From Takakia lepidozioides (Eukaryota; Plantae; Bryophyta): a stretch of 64,000 bases of DNA. The notes beneath the pieces are model-generated. The model was not told the origin of the DNA. It did no database searches and saw only the letters and a list, made by a program, of their open reading frames with translations. This document shows, piece by piece, positions 49,209-58,350 of the stretch. Made by a program: the position numbers and the translations under genes. Location: the NCBI GenBank assembly GCA_030704615.1, contig CM060734.1:53630001-53694000 (forward strand), read 5' to 3'. Numbering within the stretch: the stretch's first letter is position 1; each line of letters starts with the position of its first letter.

Positions 49209-52172
49209 TCATTGACATATTGTCAAGTCATGTGCAACAAGCCGAAAGCCAGCACCACCTTGGAAGTCGTAGACATCAAGTCCACATACCACATCTACCC
49301 TACACCCTGAAGGTACCTTGCTCCGGAATACCACTGGATCCACTGCATCCAGGCCCAGACTTCTTGTCCCTGCTGCATTTTTGTGAGAAAATCTGGTGGT
49401 GTAGCAAGCAGATTCTCCTGTGCCTGTGGTACCAATCCTGTAATCAGCCCCCATTCAAACCAATTGTATTTTAGATCCATCTTCGCCAAATTATGGAAAA
49501 TGATGGTTGATGCATATTAAGCCAGAAGGATTTATCCGCAACCTTATGCACAGTAAACAAGTGCTATACACAACCAGTCCCAGCAGATGTGAAACCAGCT
49601 GACACAATCTAGCATGAGGAGAGAAAAGTACCTGAGGCGAATTGCATGAACTCCACCCTCCCTCCAGATGGTTGTCGGCCTCCAGAGAGAGTGCCCACCC
49701 ATTGCTGCATACTTGCTGTGAACAAGAGTTTCCAATGTAAGAAGTAAGCTGCAAATTTCCTGAGATGGCTCGATGACAACGTTGAACGTTGGTTTGCCCA
49801 TCTTGTCAAAAGCATAGGTCTCACTGACACTGTATCTCATTGTGGCACTGGGCTCATACAATCGCAAAGGTAGCCCATCATACAACACTATTGGAATCTG
49901 CTGACCCCATGAGCTTGGTCCCTCTTCCACATTAAGTAAGCATGCACGGACCTCCTTTGGTGACAAGCATGCATGCCCCCTGTTTCTGTCTTCACTGGAT
50001 GACAGCAGAGTCCTCTCCAGCATTCTAGTCTCTGCTATTGTTGCACTCCAAGAGGACTTACAACCATGGAGGATACAGCTGCGTGCTGCTACCCACTCCT
50101 CCGATGTTGATGTGGTTGAAGAAGATACACTTTGAAATACTTGGCAGGGTGCATCTCCACCATCACTGCCTCTATCCAGGCTTTTCACAAAGCACGAGTC
50201 TTCTTGTTCGATTGGTCCACACCCATTTCCTTCCAAGTCCCACCCACACCCATTGATAGCGTCACCAAGCTCAGACCCCATCACCTTGACAACCTCTTCC
50301 AGTCTTTCAGATAATGCATGATGATCAAAGACATCCTTTGATTCAGAAAAATCAACAGGAATAGTGTCCTGATTACTGTTCATAAACTCATTGATGAGGG
50401 ACTGCATGGATGCCATATTTGTTACGGAGTCTTGAGCCATTACAGCAGAATGAATTGCATTATCAGATAAGCACAAATCAGAGAGAGAAACTGTTGTTTG
50501 AGGATCTTCCAGTAACACATGAGAGCTGCTTGCAGACCGGGGCTTTGAAAAAAGTTGGCCTGAAGAAGAAACACCGGGCATAGCCAGACTTGCACCAGTG
50601 AAGATAGCTGGAAACTTAGCCTCCTGCAGAGCAAGAGTCAATTTAGAAACTTGTACATAGGCACTCTCCCATCAAACCCCTGCAAGATTTATGACATATC
50701 TTGCTAGACATTGTGTGGGAACCTCAACAACCTCTACAGTCGCCATGCCCCTCCCACCCGTCACTTTAAGTGCAGAAAAGCTTCACTACGAATCGAAGTA
50801 GAGGTAGAAGAATAGACAAATGGAAACAAACAAGCACAAGGACAGGTAGAAGTTGCTTACAAGGAACAACAAGGTGGCACATGATCTCAAAATTTGAAAA
50901 TTCATCCGTGCGTCTCCTATGCTCCTGTTTCACATGGCGGTTAAGGCAATGTGGGCCAAGTTACTGGACAGATATTGGCGCTGGGTGGAAAATAATCTTT
51001 ATTACCACTGGCTGCAAGTTGAGAGTACTGATGCTGCTGCCAAACATTCCACCTTCCCGAAAACATCTTGCTTGTGCAGACAAAGCACACTTTCTAGATG
51101 GTGAGTTCGTCACAAACACGTGTTTGTTATTTGTGCATATCTGGCCACCAAAGTCCCTGTTGCTTCATTTTACTTTATGGATCTGAGTATCATTCTAAAA
51201 GTGAGTCAATGGAAGCCATATTTGTCATGTGTCACTGCAAGCACTATGACTTGTGTGAGAAGGAAAATTGGTTCATGACTTTGCCTCGAGAATCAAATAT
51301 AATATAAGTGGATCCACATCCAAGTGTCAGTATCATGAGTCCTTCCCAGCTTGTTATCTGGCACTGTGACCCTTCCCTGTGAGGCCTCTACTGTCTTGTC
51401 AGGTGCTATCTTGGTGACGACAAGCCAAATAGAAACGTAGAAATGAAGCTAGAAATCCCACCCATACCTGTGTACCTGCTCTCCAAGGCCGCAGTAGGAG
51501 GCCAGACTATCCATCTGCAAATTACAACTCACATATTCAGCACAAAGCCCCGTTGATGAGCTGATGGCTTACCCGATGGTTCACACTTGGCAAAGGCTTT
51601 ACCTTCATATTACCAGCTCGATTTCCAAAAGTGGATTTCAGTAGGGGCAATGTATCTATCACTTGCACAGGCTCCGGAGCTGATTGCCCAACTTCAGCAA
51701 ACGCTTCTCGGATCCTCGGAATGTCAAACCTTAAGATGTTGTGCCCTGCCCACACTTGACCTGCACAAATCACATACCAACCGCACAACGGAAAGTCACT
51801 AAAACATTTTTCATCTAGGAAATTTCTACTCGTTGCCTGATATCACTCACCATATCTCTTGCTGCAACGGGCGCTCTGTTAAAGCAAGAGATACTGACCA
51901 TCGAGCAACTCGTATATTTTCCCAGCGATCTCTGAGAAAAGCGGTGCGTCCGCCACATCCTTCTTGGTAATGCCATTGCAACCCACGCTTCGACTCGAGA
52001 TGGCAGAGAGGGATGATGGCTGCACGAATGTGGAGTACGAATCCAGCTCCACTAAACCTTTCACAGACACCACTACGGCTCCAAACTCCAGAAGCTCAAA
52101 TTTCTGGCCTTTCTTTGTGGGTATTGTCGTCTCTACATCCAGGAACACGATTGCAACGGGCCCCATTTGCAT
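49209..52172 (-). CDS. NEN-type (NAC45/86-dependent exonuclease-domain) DEDDh 3'-5' exonuclease; 6 exons
   Basis: IVFLDVETTIP...LLEFGAVVV...SYSTFVQP..SVGCNGIT | VWAGHNILRFDIPRIREAF...IDTLPLL...FGNRAGNMK | MDSLASYCGLGEQVHR | SIGDARMNFQILRSCATLLFL | long middle exon | ...LDVYDFQGGAGFRLVAH. This architecture is characteristic of plant NEN1-4. Confidence 0.9.
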
Positions 52173-52259
52173 AGAGCTCGGCAGCGTGCAGCATCAACCA
52201 GCTGAATTCGTGAGCCTTTCTAAAAGCCCACCTCCCCTTCCTCCCCAAGAGAAGAAGAA

Positions 52260-52410
52260 GGACCCAATCCCGCGTATGACCCATACCTGCGGTTCGGCCG
52301 ACATGGATCGGTTCCTCAACGTGAGTATAAAAACCCACCGTTGTGCATCAGCGCGGAGAGGGTTTGCACCCTCACCCGCTCAGCGCGGACTGCCTGTTAC
52401 TATGGCAGTC
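52260..52410 (-). ncRNA. Candidate Fanzor omegaRNA scaffold (structured tract after the Fanzor stop codon)
   Basis: Consecutive hairpins on the minus strand: GACTGCC-9nt-GGCAGTC (52388-52410); GCGG.GAGGGT-GCAA-ACCCTC.CCGC (52353-52379); CAAC.GTGGGT-TTTTAT-ACTCAC-GTTG (52317-52343); a multi-stem including CCGC.GTATG-GGT-CATAC-GCGG (52260-52315). Position matches known Fanzor/TnpB omegaRNAs. Confidence 0.55.
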
Positions 52411-55400
52411 TTAATGAGATGTGTGGCCGGGCACGTCCCTCTCCGGCCTCTTCGCCCTGCAGAATGCCGGGTGGCGAGGCCGGGAGTCCCGCATTTCCAA
52501 GAACCGGTGCATGATGTTGTCCCAACCCAGCCTGCTATCGGACTACATGGAACCGAGACGCCAACGCAGCCGCGTATGAACTGCGACGCCCAATCTTTCC
52601 CGGGAATCGGCACTGGGGCATGGTCGCCATCATTTCGCTGCAACCGCAACATAGTTGGCTAGTTCGAAACTCGTCCACCATCAACATCTCGCTTGTCTTC
52701 TCCCATATCTTCTTCTGCAACTTGGAGGTTGGTGTGCTCTCCGTCCCAGGGCTGTTGTGCGCGAAAGAGGCGTTCCCAAAGGCCACCACTGTCGTCGGGT
52801 CGTTTACCGTCCGACTCACCTCCCTCGCAAGCGTCGCGTAGGCCCGTTCCGTCTTTATCCATGTCGCCCACCTCAACTCTCATTTGTTCACCACGTAGAA
52901 CTCGTTCAGTGCCCGGAGATGTGTCAGCACCGACGCCGCGTATAGGCTATACCCCGCTACAGTCGCCACCTTAGCAGAGATGGTGTTGACCCTCGAATTG
53001 AACTGCGTCATGGCTTCGTTCCTGGCCATCCACCTCTTCGTCAGCTTGGCCTGCCGCCGGTATCCGCACATGGTGTAGAACCGCGCCTTGCTGCAACGGA
53101 TCACTTGGAACCGGTCCCCTTGGCCCACCCACGGCTCGTTCAGCGCGGCCTCTGCTTTGGGCGAGTACACCACTCCCGTGTAGAGGTATTTTCGGCCCGG
53201 GTCGATGGACACGACTCGTTTAGGCAATGGCACGTGGGTGTGCGGAGTCGGTTTGGGCATTTCCTTTTTCTTGCGTCCTTTCACCTGCGGAAAAACAAGA
53301 CCAACGTCCGTTTAAAAAAACGTCAGTCTACAAGATGGTTTCCCTCAACTAAAGAGACGACATGCATGTCCACTCCCAATCAAACTACCTCAGAAACAAT
53401 ATTAAGCTTTTACTCCAATACATTTCCCAAACCAAAAGAGAAGCTCTCGCGTATCCAACGCCTTAAATGGGGTCTTTCACTAAACAAGGTTGTGGCGCCT
53501 GGAGGCACTCGACCACACATGTTTGCAGGGGGTATATACGGTCATAAACCATTCTGTTGTAGACATCGACCCCAACAGATCATGTTGCCATGTTTCTAAC
53601 CTTCAGCTAAAACCGATTTCGATTCATAGAAACGTCAGATAAATAACTCATCTAAGGCGACGAGCCTCGCTTTCGGGTTCAAGGAGGGTGGGAATATCGC
53701 CTTCCCGCACATGGCCCTTGACATTGCACATAATAAGACGATGTTGGTCGTCCAACAAGTTCACCTGCATTTGCGTCACGAGCCGGTACGCCCGATCACT
53801 AAAGACAATAAAAAACAAACATGGCGAATGAAGCAGTTGTCTTACTCTGGCTGTGACTGCAGGTTGGCGTCGGGCGCGAGCCCGACAACACACTGACCGC
53901 AACCCCGTCAGTGGTTATAAAATTCTGAAACTTGAGTCCTCTTCCAGGTCGTTCAAACTTCCGGTCGATTTTGAAAAAGTTGTTCCATCCCAACAAAATC
54001 CATAATTGGTAAAACGAAATGAACACGAACTTGGGGCATATGTCATCAATGGACACGACGACGATGGGAGCACGAGTGACCTCCCGTCGTTCCGCACGTG
54101 CGGCATACACCTGATGACCGCTGGTCACTGATTCCTCCTCTAGTACCCCACTTGCTTCCCCCTCCCCGAAAAACACAAGCAGGATTCGGGGGCAGACTTA
54201 CAATCTCCACAGTTCGTCGTCGCTCATGCTTTCTAGACCAGGATGATTCTGCACTATCGGTGTTGCCTTTGTCGCAAACGACCGCAAGATGGTGTTGGTG
54301 ATGGCTAACTGGACTGGCCTGACGCGCTTTTGCGGTAGGAGTGAGAAGAGCCGGAGCCCTTTGAGCTTCCTCGAATATGTCGGGCGCCGTCTCGGATGCA
54401 GCCTGTTGGCGTTGGCCATATCCTCGTGGTATGCACTGAGGTCTTGCAGGATTTTCCATGTTGTTGTGAGGTAGTCCTGCTTCTTTAGGTCGAGCGGCAA
54501 CAGTTCTCCAGGAAGAAGGTTGGTTATGATGAGGTGGCATATGTGGACCAGACTCTCAATCTGTCCGACATCCATATCTCGGAGCGTGGTGTACCGCGCC
54601 TTGCACGAAAGAATCGACGCCTCCGCGGATCCGTGCTCGTGGGCAAGTGTGGCCTTAATCACCAAGGAGACGGCGGCGCGGATGCTTTTGGTGTGGAAGG
54701 AAACATTGGATTTTGACACCATCATTCTTGCCCATTTCCGGAGGCAGGGAACCAAATTGACGGCGAGGGAGGTCTTGAAGTTGTCATGCATCTCATCGGC
54801 TAGCATGTCGGTGAGGTGAGTCCAGTGAGGCTTGCGCATCAGTTTTGTGTATCCTACCGGCCGGAGCAACTTGAACCGAACGTATGATGTGATGATTTCG
54901 GGGTCCTTGTTTTGGAGGAGCCTCCCGTCGTTCAGGACGGCACACACTGCCCGGTTGAAAAACGCCGACTTGCGTTGTAAGCCGTCGGGGAGGGCCAATC
55001 CTTCTGCAAGACATTTGATGATATGGTGCGACGCGAACAGAGATGCTTCCACAGCCAGCGGCGTCAATTCCTTGACAGTTTCCTCCACAACTTTTCTCAT
55101 GGCGTCCCTCAGGCAGAAGCTTTTGCTGAAGCTGACCCCCTTTTGACGGCGCGCTGCTGTTTCCTCTGGCTCAAAGCCGTCGATGGCACGGCTGGCTGAG
55201 GACCTGCTAGGCCGTTGGATATCGTGTTGCGCTCGCCGGGTGGAAGAACTGCAATTCTGATGGCCTTTGGTGGCAGGGTGTCGTTGATGACCGGTTGACG
55301 AAACACCGTTTCTTAGAGGAATCGGTCTGTGTAGTCTTGGACGCGGCTGGACGTTTCCTCCCGGCCCGCGGAACACCGGCTTCTGTCGGACTGGACAGAT

Positions 55401-55480
55401 TGGGACTGTCTTCAATCTTTTGTTGTTTCTTTCCTAGTAACTTCCGTCTTGATAATTTGCTGCAATCCACTAACGTCAAT
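52411..55480 (-). pseudogene. Fanzor1 (eukaryotic TnpB-like RNA-guided RuvC nuclease), intron-containing, inactivated
   Basis: N-terminal helical region (SKSFCLRDAMRKVVEETVKELTPLAVEASLFASHHI), [20 protein letters not shown], RuvC-I RVVSIDPGRK, VVAFGNASF, RuvC-II+ZnF VDEFRTSQLCCGC, RuvC-III WNRDANAA (inverted, 52515-52571), and C-terminal NIMHRFLEMRDSRPRHPAFCR. Lesions include an in-frame TGA at 52880-52882 and a frameshift near 53885. The 5' boundary is approximate. Confidence 0.88.
53648..53799 (-). pseudogene. RPS28: Ribosomal protein eS28 (RPS28) gene fragment inside the Fanzor intron
   Basis: VIGRTGS, a small frameshifting deletion, then [43 protein letters not shown]. This matches the eS28 C-terminus (…[25 protein letters not shown]). 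Confidence 0.9.
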
Positions 55481-55481
55481 G

Positions 55482-55703
55482 AAGCATCGTGTGGCGGCAG
55501 ATTTGGAAATTGATCCGCATCGTCGGATTCGGTGGGACATCTCCGTGTACAATGCCGTTCTAGTGTCGTTGAATTCGGTGTTTCTGTCCGACGTAGGTGT
55601 GAATGCGTTGATCGTTGTTTGCGTGGCGATGTTGGAAAGCCAAGTACAAACGTCCACGGAGCATCGCGTGACGGCGGATTTTGAAATTGATCCGCGTCGT
55701 CGG
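55482..55703. repeat. ~44-bp imperfect direct repeat upstream of the Fanzor ORF
   Basis: AGCATCGTGTGGCGGCAGATTTGGAAATTGATCCGCATCGTCGG (~55482-55525) versus AGCATCGCGTGACGGCGGATTTTGAAATTGATCCGCGTCGTCGG (~55660-55703). Confidence 0.75.
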
Positions 55704-57399
55704 TTGTGTCGTTGTACTTTTGTTGTCTTTGGTGTTATTGTCAGACGTTGGATGCACACGGTCGTTTCCCAGCTCCTCAGTTTATTGTTGGCTGAACACA
55801 ACAGTCACTTTTTCTCGTTACTAATAATATGTATATTTTTAGATTTTTTTTTGAATATATATATATATATTCCCTGCTCCGGGGGTAGGGTGAATTATTA
55901 ATGATAAATATTTGTCTTATTATTTTATATAATAAAATGTTTAATTTATTTCGACGGTTTACCACAGGGTGGAATTCCATTTTGCCTCGTCGTCCAGAGG
56001 CGCTTCGTCAATCTAATATCTATGTGTTCAGCCGTTGAGTTATTCGCTCAGTGTCTCTATTTCTGGATATTCGCGATGGTTTCCACAGGCTCTCCTCCTC
56101 GTCCTCTCCGTTCTGCTGCAGATGGCCTGGTGCAATTGACATAGGGTCATACATGTTAAGGCATTTGCTGAATTATTTCAAACTTAAGATTGTTTTTTTA
56201 CTTTGAAGGGTTTGGGGTGGGGGGGGGGGGGTCAACTACTAGGCTATGAACTATGTTCAAATTGTTGAAGGTGTCCTGATCTCGAGTAGATGATTGGAAG
56301 TCTATGTGCCAAGTCCATGAACCAGTTCTATGCGCCGTCCGTGGAGCGGCTCGGACAATGACGACGACATTGTTTCTTATGATGTCGTTTCGAGGATAGT
56401 CACATGTATTTATAAGCAGCAATTTTTTTTTTTCGGAGGGAGTGATCATCATCGTTTTGTCGTTACAAACCGTCGGATGCGGCGTCTACCTCGGTCCTTT
56501 GGTGGACGCCTCAGTCCATCGGTGGACAGTGGACCGTTGGAGGTAGACAATCGTTTTCCATCCTCCAAGTTTATCGTTGGCAGATTTCTTGTTATTAATA
56601 TTAATAGTTTTTTTTCAAATCATTTCTATGAATTTCTTTCCTTACCTGGTGCATGAGGTAAGTCATTGGAATGTGGCATAGGGTGAAATTGACGGTCATT
56701 TCTTTAGCCATTGAGGTTATCATTGGCTGAACACGACGGTTTCCATTTTCCTCTTTTAATAGTTAATATGGACTTCAGCCTGTTGAGCGAATTCTACACA
56801 CCCATCCTTTAGCTATCCGAGGCAGATACTCAAGAGTGGAGGTGCTGGAATATAATGAGTGGTTGTTCAAAACAGTCAAACATGACCTGCGTCTAAAGTT
56901 TCATGGGGGTGCCATGAATCTGCTCATTCATGAGTTCATGATAAGTTGATTTATCAATGAATTTGGGTATCCTAGTTATAGATTACTTATGTAATCTCTT
57001 TAGTTCATGTTCTTTTTACTATCTAAGCATGTCACAGCTTCACTCAGGTCTTTCTACGCAGTATGGGAGTCGGAGTTTGATTCGCTTGATGTAATATTCA
57101 TGGTGTACAATTAGGTTGTAGCCTCTATGGCCTCAGCTTGGCCTCCTATTTCTACTCCGATACTTTGTTTTCTCATATCTCATCTGTAGGGGCTGCTCTC
57201 AGGCTCACTGTTGATGTCACGCTCCTCCACCCTAGCCCAGCCGGTGCTTCCTATTTCCTGCTTCTACTGTATGCCATCATGTAAATGATCCATTTTCTTG
57301 TCCCTTTGTTGCTTTTATACCCCTGCGATCCGTCCTAATCGCCGTTAACTACCTTGACTCTAACCGTTATGGATCCCTTTCTTGGTTCTGATTCAACTA

Positions 57400-58350
57400 T
57401 TGCGCTCATGGTCCTGTTACCCGTCATGATTGTGGGTTCCCACTCATGGCCTACGTCATCATGGTCCACGTTCCCAGTCATGGTTGGCATTCCCGCTCAT
57501 GGCCCGCTCATGGTCGGCGTTCCTAGTCGTACATGATCGTGTGTTCCCACTCATGGTGGGCATTCCCGGTCATGGAACGCTAATGGTGTTCATGGTTTCT
57601 CAGCCATGACCTAATCCTCATGGTCACAAAATCATGTTGGCTCATGGTCGTTGTGCCATGAAGATTCATGGCCGTAGTACCATGACCGCTCAATTTCAAC
57701 CTCTCAGTTAGGGAATTCTTCTAGCTATACAATGGTCAATTTTTGCCTTTCAAATAAACAATTGTAGAATGATCAATTTGATCTTTTCAAATGGACAATT
57801 CTAGATTGCACAAATATTAATTTCAGCTGTTAAAATTGGTAATTCTAGCCCCCCTAATGGCCAATTCCAACCCTTGAACTACAATGTAAAATGCAATTCA
57901 AGCCCTTCAAATTGGCAATTCCAGTCCCTAAAATGGCCAACTCCGGCCGCCCCTTAAAGTGTAATTTGAGCCCTGAAATTTGTCAATTCCAGCCCCTGAA
58001 ATGGCAATTTCAGCTCCTGAAATTGGCAGTTCCAGCCCCTCAAATTGCAAGTATAGCCCCTGAAATTGGCAATTCGAGCCCATTCGAATTTTAATTCCAG
58101 CCCCTCAAATGGCCAATTCAAGCCCCTCAAATCGTATTTCCAACCCCTGAAATCAATGTAATTTACTAAGTTCGAGCCCCCTCAAATTGCAATTCTAGCC
58201 CCTAAATTGGGAAATTCCTGCCTTTGAAATGACAATTGTAGCCCCTAAATTGGGTAATTCTAGGAACCCTTCAAACTAATATTTCTAATTTAAATGAGGG
58301 AATGGTATTCTCAAAGTTAATAATGTACATTTGGAAGAGCCCTTGAAATG
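57400..58350. repeat. Two adjacent degenerate short-period repeat tracts (TCATGG-rich; then AATTCCAGCCCCT.AAATTGGC ~21-22 bp)
   Basis: TCATG(G/A) recurs through 57400-57690, and CAATTC.AGCCCCT.AAAT recurs more than 10 times through 57830-58270. Confidence 0.75.

Follow-up and report, generated by a model that had tools for sequence, protein, structure and literature searches.

The 95 nt that follow the stop codon of a broken Fanzor1 gene in Takakia lepidozioides (minus strand, 52410-52316 of the 64,000-nt stretch analysed here, hereafter the window) are the right end of a multi-copy transposon whose Fanzor1 gene contains introns. This end is conserved and highly structured and, judged against the layout of characterised Fanzor systems, is probably the guide-RNA scaffold of the element as well. 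The sequence-only reading of this region had taken a longer tract of four stem-loops for the scaffold of an omegaRNA. The first 95 nt of that tract are indeed a structured, multi-copy 3′ end that starts after the native stop and fits the Fanzor1 layout, whereas the fourth stem has to be excluded (Table 1).

On the minus strand, the one that encodes the Fanzor, all four of the stem-loops proposed downstream of the stop can be found. The perfect 7-bp stem among them is found as GACUGCC/GGCAGUC (SL1, 52410-52388), and the stem said to be closed by a GCAA tetraloop on the Fanzor strand is found as GAGGGU-GCAA-ACCCUC with its loop at 52367-52364 (SL2). The reported duplication of TCCGCGCTGA is also there (52389-52380 and 52357-52348), with no third copy in the whole 64-kb window. 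In the fourth structure, described as a terminal multi-branch stem, the pairing is present at 10 of 11 positions, but it lies outside the element and folds no better than chance.

When the whole 161-nt tract is folded, its minimum free energy is -70.9 kcal/mol (z -4.67), and none of 200 dinucleotide shuffles does as well, which bears out the expectation that it would outperform shuffled controls; the plus strand of the same tract gives z -2.82. The surplus of structure lies wholly within 52316-52411 (z -4.37, again 0 of 200 shuffles as good). The fourth stem taken alone (52255-52315) has z -1.23, with 24 of 200 shuffles equal or better, a chance-level result. In a sliding scan of 96-nt segments across 4.6 kb (51600-56200; background mean z 0.07, standard deviation 1.13), the segment 52408-52313 is the most structured of 192 (z -3.7). 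Rfam holds no matching family for the tail, the best hits (E 0.57) being noise from miRNA models, and ARAGORN finds no tRNA-like element in it.

The limits of the element can be read from Logan contigs of the same organism, drawn from two DNA runs (X1 and X2) and two RNA runs (X5 and X6) and placed on 49500-55480 at 80% likeness, with depth given as one figure per contig. Contigs from paralogous copies lose their similarity to this locus at 52315 (two contigs), 52316 (three) and 52317 (one RNA contig), and beyond that point they run for 200-255 nt into flanks that disagree with one another (agreement 0.56-0.62). The summed contig depth in each of the two DNA runs tells the same boundary: it is single-copy (33/64) to about 51900, stands at 58/94 in the bin 52100-52299, peaks at 276/690 in the bin 52300-52499 and stays multi-copy onward to 55480, where the remaining bins of the element have 79-242 and 135-447. 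The flank base next to the element end was read at four loci: it is G at one, A at two and T at one.

An element end near 52260, with a sharp drop in conservation there, had been anticipated; the drop is found instead at 52315-52317, and the end is 52316. Since the paralogs diverge at this point, the fourth stem is flank DNA, which leaves the element with three hairpins. What remains is a chance structure in host DNA, within the leader of the next gene and in the very place where a guide would be read; the exact boundary also corrects the position at which such a guide would begin. Within the element, the best-supported 40 paralog differences (542 further ones are not among these) include none in 52316-52488, one at 52489 and 16 in 52624-52806. 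As 52316-52488 holds none of these 40 although its bin has the highest depth, the contigs suggest, indirectly, that the 3′ end is the best-conserved part of the element.

Within the 64-kb window, blastn finds no second copy of the locus. The DNA pattern of the tail is absent from the metagenome and viral contigs searched, and its two matches among genome contigs are chance bacterial ones. Substitutions in the paralogs relative to the present copy (49500-55480) are richer in C>T (118) and G>A (100) than in T>C (82) and A>G (59), a surplus as expected for deamination of silenced, methylated repeats.

Table 1. Coordinates of the Fanzor1 relic, its hairpin tail and the neighbouring exonuclease gene in the window
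Feature	Position	Strand	Basis or remarks
Fanzor1 pseudogene with introns	52414..55415	-	tblastn of 16 relatives and profile matches
Exons of the pseudogene	N-terminal ~55415-54198; small ~53993-53874; C-terminal ~53344-52414	-	
In-frame TGA within the C-terminal exon	52880..52882	-	ORF reading
Micro-inverted piece encoding WNRDANAA (RuvC-III)	52519..52567	+	plus-strand translation; relatives align in frame -1
Native TAA stop of the Fanzor1 gene	52411..52413	-	frame reads NIMHRFLEMRDSRPRHPAFCR plus 14 aa, fitting the C-terminal consensus
SL1, perfect 7-bp stem GACUGCC/GGCAGUC with 9-nt loop	52388..52410	-	directly 3′ of the stop codon
SL2, imperfect outer stem enclosing GAGGGU-GCAA-ACCCUC	52345..52386	-	fold; flanks are the two TCCGCGCTGA copies
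SL3, 10-bp terminal hairpin CAACG.GUGGG-UUUUUA-CUCACGUUG	52317..52343	-	1 nt from the element end
Final base of the multi-copy transposon, ...CTCACGTTGA / GGAACC...	52316	-	paralog contig ends and depth change
First 20 nt of flank, GGAACCGATCCATGTCGGCC, putative guide position if the tail is a scaffold	52296..52315	-	inferred
Fourth stem GGAACCGAUCC...GGAUUGGGUCC	52262..52315	-	10/11 paired, one of them a wobble; host flank
Transcribed leader of the NEN-like gene	52173..52374	-	X5 contig 21; 144 nt of flank plus the distal 59 nt of the tail
Exon 1, coding part, of the RNase_T/DEDDh (NEN-like) exonuclease gene	51895..52172	-	Pfam PF00929, E 5e-13

The gene upstream of the tail can be recognised in spite of its decay. 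By tblastn of relatives, coding blocks lie at about 55124-54201, 53993-53874 and 53344-52613, with RuvC-III in the reverse frame. The minus strand carries SIDPGRK as RuvC-I and VDEFRTSQLCCGC as RuvC-II plus the C4 zinc finger (Pfam TNB, E 0.002), so that the D, E, zinc-finger and RD motifs are all located, the RD part (WNRDANAA) on the inverted strand. In the frame closed by 52413-52411, NIMHRFLEMRDSRPRHPAFCR agrees with the C-terminal consensus NI...GxxRPxxFxR drawn from 15 relatives, and the TAA there is therefore the native stop; the hairpins begin directly after the true end of the coding sequence.

Neither the 405-aa N-terminal ORF nor the 113-aa RuvC-II/zinc-finger piece brought up a relative in word-based protein searches, and a protein scan of metagenome contigs gave 356 pattern matches, none of them confirmed. 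An exhaustive HMMER search with the 113-aa piece yields 142 relatives, the best of which are 46-53% identical, and in the full-length relatives the TNB domain scores above the Pfam cut-off. A profile (A1) built from the window piece and 15 relatives, when compared with solved structures, ranks the Fanzor1 proteins of Parasitella (PpFz1, 3.3e-20), Spizellomyces (SpuFz1, 5.4e-18) and Guillardia (GtFz1, 5e-9) ahead of mimivirus L79 (1.6e-4), TnpB (1e-3) and Cas12f (1e-4 or worse). On this ranking of profile matches, the protein is a Fanzor1, nearer to Fanzor1 than to TnpB or Fanzor2.

The Fanzor copy at this locus is dead, its gene being broken by the in-frame TGA and by the micro-inversion of RuvC-III, for which paralog contigs show joints of opposite strands at 52518/52600 and 52519/52567. 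No intact Fanzor copy of the family was seen in this analysis. Paralogs that lack the inversion, visible as contigs with loose ends at 52519-52567, read ...AACTGAGACGTCAACGCGGCGG on the Fanzor strand; in these, a TGA replaces the CGA (Arg) codon of the NRD motif, a CpG-type change, and from this reading they too look dead. It had been argued that the stems appear well preserved although the ORF is decayed. This argument is weak, because the ORF has only two visible lesions, and intact stems next to it need no selection to explain them.

The closest relatives of the protein are encoded on metagenome contigs, several of which are giant-virus-like. Those with 46-53% identity over the C-terminal piece lie on a 395-kb contig (L001) and a 32-kb contig (L008); both are gene-dense, carry glycosyltransferases, ATG8-like and HNH genes, and resemble giant-virus or protist DNA. 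As the closest relatives sit on contigs of this kind, there are hints of a viral route for the plant Fanzor1 lineage. Downstream of the gene, two distant relatives likewise have structured 3′ regions (z -3.8 and -2.95), and no sequence similarity was found between the DNA of the relatives and the tail.

How does the tail compare with guide RNAs that have been characterised? Fanzor1 omegaRNAs are 75-150 nt long (Xu et al. 2024, PMC11423790); their SL1 is always 7 bp, and between it and the guide stand one to three variable stem-loops. Like the omegaRNAs of SpuFz1, PpFz1 and GtFz1 described there, the Takakia tail lies at the 3′ end of a Fanzor1 gene and reaches the element end; it has a 7-bp SL1 with few further stem-loops, a resemblance taken from that paper, and its 95 nt plus a guide fit the range of 75-150 nt. 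There is no sequence similarity to these three RNAs, and the present candidate differs from them in starting exactly after the stop. Whereas those RNAs are known from solved complexes, the Takakia tail is known from sequence, and the nuclease gene beside it is broken.

In the green lineage, the intron-containing Fanzor1c of Chlamydomonas has a small RNA in its 3′ UTR that is conserved among copies (Jiang et al. 2023, PMC10530073). These genes ride on Helitron2 elements, and there are 20 more stand-alone copies of the RNA region (PMC10530073). Chlamydomonas reinhardtii CrFNuc-1 thus shares with the Takakia element its green lineage, introns, multiple copies and a structured, conserved 3′ UTR beside the element end, and the peak of depth in Takakia hints at extra 3′-end copies beyond the full genes. 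The Takakia element further resembles CrFNuc-1 and Helitron2 in having a terminal hairpin and perhaps a subterminal inverted repeat (PMC10530073; Bao & Jurka 2013, PMC3627910), but it shows the traits of Helitron2 only in part, its candidate 5′ end having no hairpin. The Takakia protein is also set apart from CrFNuc-1 in being at most 46-53% identical to anything in the collections searched.

The TnpB omegaRNA of IS200/IS605 offers a third comparison, as its scaffold overlaps a right end with a subterminal hairpin and its guide comes from the flank. In Takakia the gene is eukaryotic and contains introns, and the candidate scaffold lies wholly 3′ of the stop as far as is visible. In the literature that we searched, Fanzor guide RNAs are characterised in fungi, algae, molluscs, protists and giant viruses; searches for Fanzor in land plants, moss and bryophytes found no characterised land-plant guide RNA, and in Saito et al. 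Streptophyta appears in the tree legend only.

The hairpins might instead be subterminal signals in single-stranded DNA for an HUH or rolling-circle transposase, as in Helitrons, Helitron2 and the right ends of IS200/IS605, rather than an RNA scaffold; we regard this as a rather unlikely account of the tail taken by itself, though by analogy with IS200/IS605 right ends the two roles may coexist. SL1 to SL3 are near-perfect palindromes with only two G-U pairs, and both strands of the element tail fold as single-stranded DNA (z -3.5 and -3.7), SL3 doing so equally on either strand. With so few G-U pairs, and with the plus strand and single-stranded DNA folding similarly, the folds fit a function at the RNA level and one at the DNA level alike.

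The position of SL3, 1 nt from the element end, is that of the 3′ subterminal hairpin expected of a Helitron2 right end, and Chlamydomonas Fanzor1c copies are carried by just such elements (PMC10530073). Just upstream of SL3 and 28 nt from the end, the 18 nt at 52344-52361 have an inverted match of 15/18 at 56103-56120, the outer base of which is T on the minus strand; this geometry fits the asymmetric terminal inverted repeats of Helitron2, which lie 20-30 bp from the 3′ end (PMC3627910). By our estimate, however, a 15/18 match has a chance expectation of about 5-10%, and if 56120 were the true 5′ end, the region 56040-56125 would be expected to hold a hairpin, whereas none is found on either strand (z +0.64). 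The flank bases at the four loci show no constant T, no Rep/helicase gene is reported at the element, and three successive hairpins running from the stop codon, with an SL1 of 7 bp, are more than a Helitron end requires. Helitron2 as a firm call was rejected: there is an inverted-repeat candidate, but neither a 5′ hairpin nor a constant flank base.

Two repeats lie upstream of the gene. A direct repeat of 58 nt (84% identity, copies 177 nt apart at 55469-55526 and 55646-55703) stands just upstream of the Fanzor N-terminal ORF and may belong to the 5′ region of the element. A few kilobases upstream of the Fanzor gene, 57806-58265 is made up of degenerate tandem repeats that recur about every 22 nt, with 15 registered copies of a 45-nt unit.

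Whether the tail is transcribed can be judged from X5 and X6. Both runs were taken to be RNA on the strength of GT..AG-spliced joints of the downstream gene that are missing from the DNA runs; for X5 these joints are joined by a cover of zero at 52500-53299, where the DNA is multi-copy, and by almost none at 53900-55480. Fanzor mRNA is almost absent from both RNA data sets. The downstream gene, an NEN-like exonuclease with single-copy DNA depth and its ATG at 52172, is spliced and expressed in X5 and X6 contigs; its 365-aa exon has no homologue in the collection searched, and its leader contains four upstream ATGs.

A single X5 contig (contig 21; 398 nt, 2 mismatches, 51976-52374) joins exon 1 of this gene to the Fanzor tail. 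Its depth of 14 compares with 15-17 for the exons. Because no other X5 contig covers the tail and cover is absent upstream of 52374, the transcript seems to start in or just above SL2, at about 52374. The RNA lacks SL1, and it is the leader of the NEN-like gene rather than a discrete guide RNA. One X6 contig passes from the tail end of a paralog into 255 nt of different flank, and the two contigs together establish that transcription through the right end occurs at more than one locus; being assembled from ordinary RNA-seq, such contigs report transcribed sequence and cannot reveal small RNAs, their ends or their strand.

The unbroken run of contig 21 from exon 1 to 52374, at the depth of the exons and with a start inside or just above the tail, is what one would expect if the tract were primarily host sequence, that is, the promoter and 5′ leader of the exonuclease gene, structured for reasons of its own. 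A second structured stretch in this leader, 52288-52193 (z -2.85 in the sliding scan), points the same way. We nevertheless consider this origin very improbable, as 52316-52411 is multi-copy and is joined elsewhere to Fanzor genes with different flanks, which means that it came with the transposon. Host DNA is confined to 52173-52315, where the hairpin of the fourth stem is not above chance; use by the host would be at most a secondary co-option of a transposon end as a transcript start. In the stretch 52193-52288 itself, polypyrimidine pairs with polypurine in one hairpin (CCUUCUUCUUCUCUU/GGGAGGAAGGGGAGG) and a second one has 9 bp (GGGCUUUUAGAAAGGCUCA); the stretch looks like low-complexity sequence of the Y-patch type upstream of the exonuclease ATG.

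Another X6 contig (441 nt, depth 26) joins the C-terminal exon of a paralog to the tail through an 85-nt deletion (52367 to 52453), also present in DNA contigs of X1 and X2, that takes out the stop-codon region, SL1 and half of SL2. In the deleted paralog, the leftover GAGGC-AAA-GCCUC on the minus strand can make a new 5-bp hairpin. Separately, X5 and X6 share RNA contigs of a highly expressed transcript (873-874 nt, depth 162, ten times that of the neighbouring gene) in which a Fanzor-derived piece of about 400 nt, some 88% like 53343-53799, stands between unrelated sequence.

That a transcribed paralog has lost SL1, and that the present copy is dead, could be taken to mean that the tract is functionless, its hairpins being chance palindromes in the GC-rich 3′ UTR of a decaying pseudogene. 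This seems improbable to us, given that no shuffled control folds as well, that the tail ranks first in the sliding scan, and that the structure extends just from the stop codon to the family boundary. Contig depth is also highest at the element end, where none of the well-supported differences is private to this copy.

Taken together with TnpB/Fanzor biology (PMC10530073, PMC10432273), on which the putative guide position in Table 1 is based, these findings can be arranged into a working model. In the family as a whole, the conserved non-coding right end would fold into three stem-loops, namely the 7-bp SL1 at the stop, the GCAA-capped SL2 and the terminal SL3, and would most likely serve as the scaffold of the Fanzor guide RNA (omegaRNA or fRNA). 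We infer that Fanzor would bind this scaffold, and that transcription through the boundary would turn the next ~20 nt of flank into the guide. SL3 may double as an end signal in single-stranded DNA for a transposase. At this locus the tail is a relic, with its nuclease gene broken and the fourth stem belonging to unrelated flank, and its distal 59 nt now appear to begin the leader of the NEN-like exonuclease mRNA.

For this locus, the consequence is modest: a dead copy whose tail supplies the start of a neighbouring gene's leader. It is conceivable, though we would call it a long shot, that the Fanzor tail brings along a transcription start and a scaffold of its own, so that the relic starts the NEN-like mRNA and also gives rise to an omegaRNA with the upstream region of the exonuclease gene as its guide. 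An intact Fanzor1 encoded elsewhere could then be directed in trans to that site; if true, a land plant would naturally possess an RNA-guided nuclease that targets one of its own promoters. For the family, a candidate scaffold of 95 nt with three hairpins and a sharply mapped right end provides a concrete construct, if an intact family member exists.
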